From Takakia lepidozioides (taxonomy: Eukaryota; Plantae; Bryophyta), in assembly GCA_030704615.1 (NCBI GenBank), contig CM060732.1, positions 32,674,001 to 32,738,000 on the forward strand: a stretch of 64,000 nt of DNA, read 5' to 3'. The translations under genes were made by a program, and so were the position numbers. The notes under the pieces were generated by a model, which was not told the DNA's origin, ran no database searches, and worked only from the letters and a program-made list of their open reading frames with translations. This document shows positions 61,256 to 64,000 of the stretch, piece by piece (position 1 is the first letter of the stretch; each line of letters begins with the position of its first letter).

Positions 61256-63583
61256 TTGATCTATCTGGAGTGTGCCTTCATTAGCACCATTGGTTGATCC
61301 AACACAATTTTTAGTTCAAAATGCGAGGAGTGTAGTGGAAACTTGCAGGTATTGCCAGTCGTTGAGCAACAATCGGAGGAAAGTATAATGGAAAATGATC
61401 TCTAAAGAAGTGTCAAATTGCCTTAGTGGCCATTTGGCTATGAACTCCAAGATTAGTTGGCGCCTCCTTACCAGAGTATTACTTCTAAATTGATGTCCAC
61501 TTCAGTACAGCTGTGTCACTTCCCCTACGCCTCCCTAAGATCTACATGGTCAACTTCATGTCCACTTTACATGGTGGTTTTTATTTAATTTAATTTTTTA
61601 AATCAATTGCGCCTCGCCACGTAGCGCAGCAGCGGCGGCTGCAGTATGGTATATATGACTGCAGTGAGAGATATCACTTTGTTCATATGACTGTAGTCAT
61701 CCGGACCGTACCATCCTGTACTCATTGTGTTGACTTGGTTTGCACGACTTACAGTCATAGAAGTCATATGTACCGTTTATGACTGCAGAATAATCATATA
61801 TACAGTTATAAATACCGCGATCCAGAAAGTTGAAAACTGATGGACCCTCTCGCCACCAATAAAATGCCATTGCACTGATTGCCTTCTTGGACAACATGTT
61901 AGCCCTAGCTTGCCCCAAGATAAGGACCCAGGATAATAATGAAGCTCAACTGCATGACTCAAACGTGTAAATGAGAGCAGCATAGATCCTTAGCACAAGA
62001 CCCCACTTCACAGTGGAGCTGACAAAGCAGACGACATTCAACTTAAGCTCCGGAATCTGTCATGAAAGCGCACTGCACTGGCCTGCTCCAGCTCATGAGA
62101 AGGTAATTAACCAGATCACAGTGGCTCCTCAATGCAGAACTGCAGATAGCCTCCAACGAGCTTGTCCTCAACCATCCCTTGGCCAGTCCCAGATGGCTCT
62201 GGCAATTTCGAGCCAACCTGCAAAGGAGCGTTGTGGCCCTTCAGTAACTTCCACTACCACTGCGTACCATGTACATCCTCTATACTCTATTTGAACTTAT
62301 GATTACTCTCTTTTCGACTGCTGTGAGATCACAAATATCTTTGATTCACTGACTTATCAACACTCAGTACTGATGTAGAAGAGGAAAAGACGAGATCTGA
62401 AGTGAGAGTGTACTAACGTAGAAGATGCACAAGAGGATTAGATCTCTCCGCCATATCCACCAGAGCCAAAATAATCCCGTCTAGTTCCTGCAATTGTCTG
62501 GCTCTTTTGATGTTCCAGCTTAGGACATTCACTGATACGGTGACCAAGACCTCCACAATACGCACAGCCCTTCACTCCACTAGCCTTTGCAAGCTCCTCT
62601 GCCTCTTCCATTGGATCATCCAAAGTTGCCAAAACAGGTGGGATTCTCTGCTTGGCCTCCTTTAGCAGATGCTTCAGATCCAGAAGGATCGTCTCACTCT
62701 AGTTCTTGTTGATGAAAGAAGTGGCGATTCCAGTTTTTCCACAACGTCCTGTTCGACCTATCCTGTGCACATAGTTCTCTATCTCGGCCGGCATGTCATA
62801 GTTAATGACGTGCTGGATATCTGGGAAATCAAGTCCCTTTGAAGCCACATCAGTTGCAACGAGTACATCCTTTTTGCTCGCTTTAAAAGATGCAATTGCA
62901 TACTCTCGCTCTTCCTGATCTTTCCCTCCGTGAATGGCCACCGCCTCAACCCCCTTCACTAGAAGATACTCATGAATGTCGTCAACATCAGCTTTGTTCT
63001 CACAGAAGATGAGCACTGGTGGTGGCGTCTTCTGGAGACACTCCAACAAATAAACTATCTTTGCTTCCTGCTTCACATATTCCACCTCCTGAATGACATC
63101 CAAATTTGCTGCACCTGCCCTTCCTACATTAACTATGACTGGCTTCACCAACGCACTCTTCGCAAAGTTCTGAAACTTCTTCGGCATAGTAGCTGAGAAG
63201 AGAAGTGTTTGCCTCTGAGCCTTGAAATGGTCAAAAACCTCTCTAATGTCTTCTTCAAACCCTAAATCGATGAGACGATCTGCCTCGTCAAGCGTCAAGT
63301 ACTTGCAGTTATCAAGATTCATCTTCTTCTTGGCGAGCATGTCTTTCAGCCGTCCAGGAGTAGCCACCACAATGTGGACCCCTCTCTTTACAACTTCGAG
63401 TTGGCACCTCATGTCGATCCCGCCAATGCAAAGCATGGACCTCAAATCAGGATATCCCTTGTCTCTCAAAACCGCAGTAAATTCCTCGACCACATCAAAT
63501 GTTTGTCTCGCAAGCTCACGTGAGGGACAGACTGTTGGAGTGTCAAGGTTATAGCCCTTGCACGGCACTTTGAGAACAGAATG

Positions 63584-63655
63584 GGACGGGTAGCTTAGTG
63601 GTAGAGCACCCCACCGGAATGGGGGAGGTCCTAGGTTCCATCCCTAGCCCGACCA
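63584..63655 (+). ncRNA. tRNA-like Pol III cassette in the 5' LTR (B box mutated)
   Basis: 72 nt; A box TAGCTTAGTGG, B box GGTTCCATCC, T stem CTAGG/CCTAG, acceptor GGACGGG/CCCGACC; TTTT 11 nt downstream. Confidence 0.8.
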
Positions 63656-63804
63656 CACGCCAGTGGTTTTCCAACATGGTATCAGAGCCAAGGTTGGGGC
63701 GGTGGTCAGAATGGGTGGGCATCAGCTATAAGGGCTATGCCTTGAGGGGGAGTGTTGGAGGTGTCAAGGCTATAGCCCTTGCGCAGCACTATGAGAACAA
63801 AAAG

Positions 63805-63876
63805 GGACGGGTAGCTCAATGGTAGAGCACCCCACCGGAATGGGGGAGGTCCTAGGTTCGATCCCTAGCCCGACCA
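63805..63876 (+). ncRNA. tRNA-like Pol III cassette in the 3' LTR (consensus A and B boxes)
   Basis: 72 nt; A box TAGCTCAATGG, D stem GCTC/GAGC, B box GGTTCGATCC, T stem CTAGG/CCTAG; non-canonical anticodon loop lacking U33; TTTT 11 nt downstream. Confidence 0.85.
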
Positions 63877-64000
63877 TACGGTAGTGGTTTTCCAACGCAG
63901 ACAACGAGTCCAAAAGGTCCCTCCCCACTAATCAGTCACATCCTCAACTCTTCCTGCAACGCCAACATAATAAGTGGAAGAATAAACACTAAAGTTTTCC

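Follow-up and report, generated by a model that had tools for sequence, protein, structure and literature searches.

A very probable Helenus-type retroelement with a tRNA-like unit in each terminal repeat, inserted in a helicase gene copy of Takakia lepidozioides

Results

Architecture of the element

The stretch of the Takakia lepidozioides (Bryophyta) genome analysed here, 64,000 nucleotides of contig CM060732.1 (assembly GCA_030704615.1, positions 32,674,001 to 32,738,000) and referred to below as the window, ends within a copy of a DEAD-box helicase gene that is interrupted by a short retroelement. The element is 365 bp long, consists of two long terminal repeats (LTRs) and a 76-bp internal part, and sits within 63528-63902 when both copies of its target site duplication (TSD) are included. 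It is very probably a non-coding TRIM (terminal-repeat retrotransposon in miniature) of the Helenus type, the group in which the LTRs carry tRNA-like sequence. The features are collected in Table 1, in the coordinates of the window.

The two LTRs are 91% identical (BLAST E about 1e-53), with 13 substitutions and a single indel of 1 bp between them. Between them, the internal region opens with a primer binding site (PBS), TGGTATCAGAGCCA, the standard plant PBS, complementary to the 3' end of initiator tRNA-Met (iMet), and it closes with a polypurine tract (PPT). The element carries, in other words, the cis signals of LTR reverse transcription: an iMet PBS behind the 5' LTR and a PPT before the 3' LTR. 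A search of the window with the PBS 12-mer TGGTATCAGAGC, allowing up to one mismatch, returned no second match. Methionine-type PBS motifs were the commonest in a survey of sugar beet (PMC13570524). The three short open reading frames (ORFs) of the element (52-75 aa) gave no significant match in Pfam (none below E 0.1), and a protein search with the longest of them found no homologue; a scan for bacterial-type promoters and terminators, a type of scan not relevant to a plant, returned nothing.

This anatomy agrees closely with an earlier reading of the same DNA, the original prediction, which had proposed LTRs of 144 and 145 bp, a 14-nt PBS and a PPT, a 5-bp TSD and the absence of a coding domain. 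The LTR alignment gives exactly these lengths, the PBS and PPT fall exactly at the inner LTR borders, CAGAC is found on both sides of the element and once at the empty site described below, and the ORFs lack Pfam matches and protein homologues. The proposed TGTTGG/CCAACA ends need a correction, since they hold for the first LTR (LTR1) and not for the 3' end of the second (LTR2), which reads CCAACG. An autonomous partner may share the TGTTGG...CCAACA ends, the PBS with AAGGTTGG and a hairpin that encloses the PPT.

Table 1. Features of the element and its host gene (positions in the window; Pol III, RNA polymerase III; U3, unique 3' part of the LTR; R, terminal repeat of the putative RNA)
Feature	Position	Strand	Evidence or remark
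DDX41/RH35-like DEAD-box helicase pseudogene, 3' two-thirds	62438..64000	-	Pfam DEAD and Helicase_C; runs off the window end
Left TSD copy, CAGAC	63528..63532	.	Identical to 63898-63902; the empty-site joint 63527->63898 has 5 common letters
5' LTR, 144 bp, TGTTGG...CCAACA	63533..63676	+	91% identity to 3' LTR; at least 26 contigs with diverse continuations break at 63676-63678
TATA in the middle of a short U3 palindrome, -34 to -31 relative to the tRNA-like unit	63550..63553; LTR2 63771-63774	+	Read from sequence
tRNA-like unit of 5' LTR	63584..63655	+	Rfam tRNA 52.5 bits, E 1.9e-10; ARAGORN call without readable anticodon
A box, LTR1, TAGCTTAGTGG	63591-63601	+	Read from sequence
B box, LTR1, GGTTCCATCCC	63634-63644	+	Read from sequence
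TTTT run, candidate weak Pol III terminator, end of R	63667..63670	+	11 nt downstream of the LTR1 tRNA-like unit
PBS, TGGTATCAGAGCCA	63677..63690	+	Read from sequence; starts the internal region
Internal region, 76 bp, non-coding	63677..63752	+	LTR comparison, ORF searches
Hairpin; one arm 63729-63745 in the internal region, the other 63764-63781 in U3 of the 3' LTR	63729..63781	+	RNA fold
PPT, GAGGGGGAG	63744..63752	+	Immediately 5' of the 3' LTR
3' LTR, 145 bp, TGTTGG...CCAACG	63753..63897	+	LTR comparison
tRNA-like unit of 3' LTR	63805..63876	+	Rfam tRNA 56.7 bits, E 1.4e-11; ARAGORN call without readable anticodon
A box, LTR2, TAGCTCAATGG	63812-63822	+	Read from sequence
B box, LTR2, GGTTCGATCCC	63855-63865	+	Read from sequence
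TTTT run of 3' LTR, candidate 3' end of the element RNA	63888..63891	+	11 nt downstream of the LTR2 unit
Right TSD copy, CAGAC	63898..63902	.	Same letters as left copy; empty site

Insertion into one of two helicase gene copies

Contigs of four public runs were aligned to 62300-64000: X1 (DNA), X5 and X6 (both probably RNA) and X8 (a second species). One contig each in X1, X5 and X6 lacks the element, passing directly from 63527 to 63898 with five letters common to both sides; the 370 bp skipped correspond to the 365-bp element and one copy of the TSD, and the insertion is therefore real. The empty site belongs to a second copy of the host gene, which differs from the window version at 57 positions in 1,222 bp (about 4.7%) and is found in X1 at a depth of about 42 versus about 44 for the window version. 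A 365-bp unit has thus been inserted, with a 5-bp TSD, into the coding sequence of one of two helicase gene copies.

The interrupted gene matches human DDX41 (8c6j) with an E of 4.8e-137 and is 83-95% identical to plant RH35 homologues, the best of which (95%) is a truncated fern model. Once the element and one TSD copy are removed its frame is continuous, and within that frame the window copy has two stops, TAG at 62699-62701 and TGA at 63936-63938; the second copy has G at 62701 and so reads CAG (Gln) instead of TAG. The two copies stand at 1:1 in DNA, whereas in X5 and X6 the empty second copy dominates (depths 43.7 and 11.1) and the window copy is found at a depth of 9.9 or is absent. Because the window copy is interrupted by the element, carries two premature stops and is outweighed by the second copy in the runs that are probably RNA, we conclude that it is a decaying duplicate and that the element is one of its lesions. 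The LTRs have diverged by about 9.7% (Kimura two-parameter distance calculated by hand from 9 transitions and 4 transversions), which places the insertion millions of years ago and means that this copy is surely inert.

A dispersed family, also found in a second species

The summed contig depth in X1 is 4,500-63,700 over the element and 70-100 over its flanks, that is, 50-700 times higher over the element. At least 26 contigs match the window as far as 63676-63678 and then continue into unrelated and mutually different sequence, and others break before 63533 and before 63753; these breaks are LTR ends at other insertion sites. The family is dispersed and of high copy number in this organism, given the excess depth and the many different continuations of the LTR ends. 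A BLAST search with the element found no other copy within the window itself. An absence of other copies, which would have refuted the original prediction, is contradicted by the X1 depth, the diversity of the flanks and the presence of the LTR in a second species.

The same depth and LTR-end joints dispose of one reading of the locus, namely that a tRNA pseudogene and its flanks were duplicated locally in tandem and that no retroelement is involved. Two tRNA-like units in direct orientation, 221 bp apart, are what such a duplication would give. It would not, on the other hand, leave each LTR bordered precisely on its inner side by a PBS or a PPT, produce a 5-bp TSD with a precise empty site in the second gene copy, or join the LTR ends to many different sequences, and we consider it already refuted by the contig data, with a negligible residual probability.

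In the second species (organism B, run X8), very deep contigs are 85-95% like the LTR, and the flanks leave no trace. They cover 63574-63658 and 63762-63871 and represent two or more variants, which diverge upstream of about LTR position 43; their consensus behind the tRNA-like unit ends TTTTCACA followed by TGGTA, which corresponds to the LTR end followed by the PBS. It is in one of the variants that the tail after the tRNA-like unit is longer, with TTTTCACA at its end and TGGTA next. The internal region has no match in the X8 contigs at 85% likeness.

Some contigs depart from the standard layout. Several in X1 and X5 follow the LTR as far as ...GGTTTTC (63671) and then read TGACA(G/T)TGAAT... 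in place of CAACA and the PBS; they may represent a subfamily whose LTR ends differently, or a different repeat that shares the tRNA-like head, such as a source SINE (short interspersed nuclear element). One X1 contig joins 63676 to 63753 and skips the 76-bp internal part, with other letters possible in between; it may reflect an LTR-LTR junction, a copy whose internal region differs, or an artefact of the assembly graph. An exact 26-mer of the tRNA-like core had no match among metagenome, prokaryote-genome and viral contigs, collections that are poor in plant DNA, so that the blank is uninformative.

The tRNA-like units

In each LTR the analysis recovered what had been predicted, a 72-nt unit of tRNA origin that has A and B boxes and is followed by TTTT. 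The Rfam tRNA model matched both units above its threshold of 29 bits, at the scores given in Table 1, and the boxes and T runs could be located. In both LTRs the boxes stand at the usual tRNA positions, and TAGCT...TGG and GGTTC are present in both. Between 63584 and 63891 the two LTR TTTT runs are the only runs of three or more T. We considered selection against internal Pol III terminators and dropped it, since 28% of shuffled sequences are equally free of other T runs and the depletion is not significant.

Upstream of the units, the U3 palindrome brings a TATA to -34, and LTR2 has in addition a CAA at -7 to -5. Plant tRNA genes carry TATA and CAA motifs at such upstream positions, and the TATA may act as an upstream element of the plant tRNA-gene type, a candidate role. 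The unit is also the best-kept part of the LTR, as 3 of the differences between the LTRs lie in it versus 11 elsewhere (Fisher p 0.046).

The units are not working tRNAs, since the Rfam alignment reveals mismatches in two stems (A3-A70 in the acceptor, A31-G39 in the anticodon stem) and a C at position 33, and a Ser-type anticodon, GGA, is combined with a class I body that has no long variable arm. The idea that these are two functional tRNA genes located by chance in a repeat can draw on Rfam scores well over the threshold and on the LTR2 unit, whose minimum-energy fold is a cloverleaf; we nevertheless give it next to no credence. The LTR1 unit has no cloverleaf at minimum energy, ARAGORN reports both as 'tRNA-???' with no normal anticodon loop, the stem mismatches, C33 and anticodon speak against it, and most Helenus units are likewise not functional tRNAs (Kojima 2024, PMC10886601).

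A hairpin at the PPT/LTR junction

The end of the internal region and the start of the 3' LTR are predicted to fold into a hairpin whose stem has 17 bp with one bulge and whose 18-nt loop contains the PPT G-run together with the LTR's first 11 nt. The energy of the fold is -28 kcal/mol (z -3.1), and 2 of 200 shuffles were as good. Its role is a matter for speculation from a predicted structure: it may help in plus-strand priming, or it may be recognised by proteins of the partner element. The text of the Helenus description does not contain the words hairpin, palindrome or inverted repeat (Kojima 2024, PMC10886601).

Other features of the window

An intact, intronless ORF of 727 aa at 38151-40334 (- strand) encodes an RNA-editing factor of the PPR-E-E+-DYW type; its best matches, from the lycophyte Diphasiastrum complanatum, are only 54-58% identical, and no close Selaginella protein was found. 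The ORF at 2636-3379 (+ strand) has Integrase_H2C2 and rve domains and looks like a fragment of a Ty3/gypsy-type retrotransposon; it is unrelated to the TRIM, because there is no iMet PBS elsewhere in the window. The window also contains a tRNA-Asn (GTT) gene at 29825-29898 (- strand; Rfam 71.7 bits), which serves below as a control for background tRNA similarity.

Discussion

Relationship to Helenus

Helenus was described as a group of TRIMs with tRNA-like sequence in their LTRs. Its members have a PBS and a PPT, a 5-bp TSD in fungi and plants, a length of 311-1263 bp and a conserved box A, TRGCY...YGG, and box B, GGTTC (Kojima 2024, PMC10886601). The original prediction had named Helenus as a possible precedent for TRIMs that carry tRNAs, and this was correct. 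The element described here is a short LTR element with PBS and PPT, has one tRNA-like unit in each LTR and a 5-bp TSD, is non-coding and multi-copy, and at 365 bp falls inside the published range of lengths. We are therefore highly confident that it is a Helenus-type non-coding TRIM inserted in a helicase gene copy; the Pol III transcription and mobilisation in trans that we propose for it below are drawn from its structure. The architecture itself is already published, and what the element adds is a plant host and a family, not a new kind of element. Among plants, that work lists a characterised Helenus family from Selaginella moellendorffii alone (Helenus-1_SMo; LTR 120 bp, internal region 85 bp; PMC10886601), and a literature search found no later report of Helenus in plants.

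The similarity to Helenus-1_SMo goes beyond the layout. We compared the two by eye, using the sequence in supplement Data S1 (PMC10886601), not by an alignment program. The tRNA-like units are identical at 53 of 72 positions (about 74%), as opposed to only 38 of 72 for the tRNA-Asn of the window, and some of the differences in the acceptor and T stems are compensatory, for example at pair 5:68, which is G-C here and A-T in Helenus-1_SMo. Both have CACCGG in the anticodon region, and that region is shifted by 2 nt between them. Outside the unit, the LTR ends are alike (TGTT...TTTTCCAACA), both elements have the PBS TGGTATC(A/G)GAGC followed by GGTTGG, the first ~45 nt of the internal region after this point agree at about 78% of positions, a G-rich PPT ending GAG is common to both, and both make a 5-bp TSD. 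A hairpin of the same layout can be drawn for Helenus-1_SMo, where its arms have other letters, TGTTCAGCTT ahead of the PPT and AAGCTGAACA starting at LTR position 11. The elements differ in length (LTR 144/145 vs 120 bp, internal region 76 vs 85 bp, total 365 vs 325 bp), and the U3 of our element is longer and unrelated in sequence. The hosts differ too, as the PPR-DYW gene of the window is without a close Selaginella protein. Taken together, the sequence resemblances suggest that common descent with the Helenus-1_SMo family is likely, though not proven.

The junction of LTR end and PBS is, by itself, not specific, as 38 metagenome loci (L001-L038, on Joint Genome Institute contigs) share it and none has a tRNA-like part. 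These loci are AT-rich ordinary LTR elements in which an LTR ending TTTTCCAACA is followed by an iMet PBS, and one family among them (L002, L005-L007, L010 and others) recurs in many metagenome samples.

Other small elements share parts of this organisation. Cassandra is, like our element, a non-coding plant TRIM with a Pol III promoter and terminator of small-RNA-gene origin in its LTRs and is mobilised in trans; it differs in that its unit derives from 5S rRNA, whereas here it is tRNA-like. In the account of Kalendar et al. (2008) given in PMC10886601, Cassandra elements are 565-860 bp long and their transcription by Pol III was demonstrated experimentally. A search with Rfam found no 5S rRNA match at E up to 10 in 63400-64000, and found tRNA instead. 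Ordinary plant TRIMs (the Pol II type, 'TRIMp2' of Kojima) resemble the element in size, in the order LTR-PBS-PPT-LTR, in the iMet PBS and in the 5-bp TSD, but their LTRs are without a unit resembling a small-RNA gene. Plant TRIMs are often found in or near genes (PMC13570524), as this element is. SINEs derived from tRNA (SINE2) also have a tRNA-like head with A and B boxes, are short and high in copy number, and depend on a partner; they differ in having no LTRs, PBS or PPT, in being copied by the machinery of long interspersed nuclear elements (LINEs), and in their LINE-like or A-rich tail. The direct terminal repeats with PBS and PPT rule out that the element is a tRNA-derived SINE.

Transcription and mobilisation

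By analogy with Cassandra and SINEs, we infer that the element is of a kind transcribed by Pol III from within its 5' LTR, with release of a short RNA of about 85 nt. TFIIIC would bind the A and B boxes of the 5' tRNA-like unit, and Pol III would start at or just before the unit (about 63584) and read through the weak T4 run at the end of R. From there it would continue across the unique 5' part of the LTR (U5, CCAACA) and the PBS, through the internal region and the PPT, and, after U3, terminate where the 3' LTR has its T4 run; the resulting RNA would be about 308 nt long, and its terminal repeat about 85 nt. On this RNA, the Gag, reverse transcriptase and integrase of an autonomous element would act in trans; termination at the first T4 run would instead leave a dead-end tRNA-like RNA of about 85 nt, a possibility that the original prediction had raised. 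Judged from the LTR ends, the PBS and the 5-bp TSD, the autonomous partner is probably Ty1/copia-like. The same junction of LTR end and PBS occurs in one Ty1/copia element among the metagenome loci (L022), in which 8267-10312 encodes copia-type gag, pre-integrase and integrase domains, and this hints at a partner of the copia type.

Several observations weigh against this reading. In the copy described here the B box of LTR1 and the A box of LTR2 each contain a single mismatch, a full-length RNA could form only if transcription passed the T4 run in the 5' LTR, and the scarcity of other T runs in the putative transcript is, as noted above, not significant. The runs all consist of contigs, so that RNA ends and strand cannot be read from them, and in X5 and X6 pieces of the LTR occur in longer contigs joined to unrelated flanks, as host read-through would give. 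No autonomous partner was found in the window, and the resemblance to Helenus-1_SMo was judged by eye and not by a program.

Some of these points would suit a different reading, which we consider possible though doubtful: an element of the same class in which the tRNA-like unit is a passenger, for instance a SINE relic in the LTR, and the template RNA comes from a Pol II start in U3 or from host read-through. The longer X5 and X6 contigs (one of 971 nt at depth 111) and the non-significant depletion of T runs fit it, much Pol III transcription would end at the first T4 run, inside the 5' LTR, and Kojima 2024 notes that Pol III promoter function in Helenus is without experimental validation (PMC10886601). 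A passenger would not be expected, however, to be the best-kept part between the LTRs (3 vs 11 differences), nor to be kept across species, and yet the unit is covered by the contigs of organism B and is 74% identical to that of Selaginella. The boxes, their spacing, the T run 11 nt downstream and the TATA at -34 together have the geometry of a plant tRNA gene, and the putative transcript of ~308 nt lies within the length range that Kojima links to Pol III elements (PMC10886601). We therefore prefer a Pol III unit that would serve the element.

A more far-reaching proposal can be built on the comparison with Selaginella. The present family and Helenus-1_SMo might descend from one ancient plant lineage of Cassandra-like age, and not from separate captures of a tRNA; that lineage would have kept both the Pol III unit and the hairpin that presents the PPT, the hairpin would be a cis signal for trans-mobilisation of the copia type, and the copies would be live Pol III/TFIIIC sites. 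We think this combination unlikely as it stands.

Implications

Each copy of the family adds two sequences above the Rfam tRNA threshold, and counts of tRNA genes in this genome will be inflated unless the family is masked. The locus is also a clear example of TRIM insertion into coding sequence, the empty site being preserved in an apparently intact paralogue. Finally, a second high-copy plant family that, judged by eye, resembles the one from Selaginella outside the tRNA part as well, together with a related family in a further species, suggests that Helenus is an established lineage of plant elements and not a one-off.

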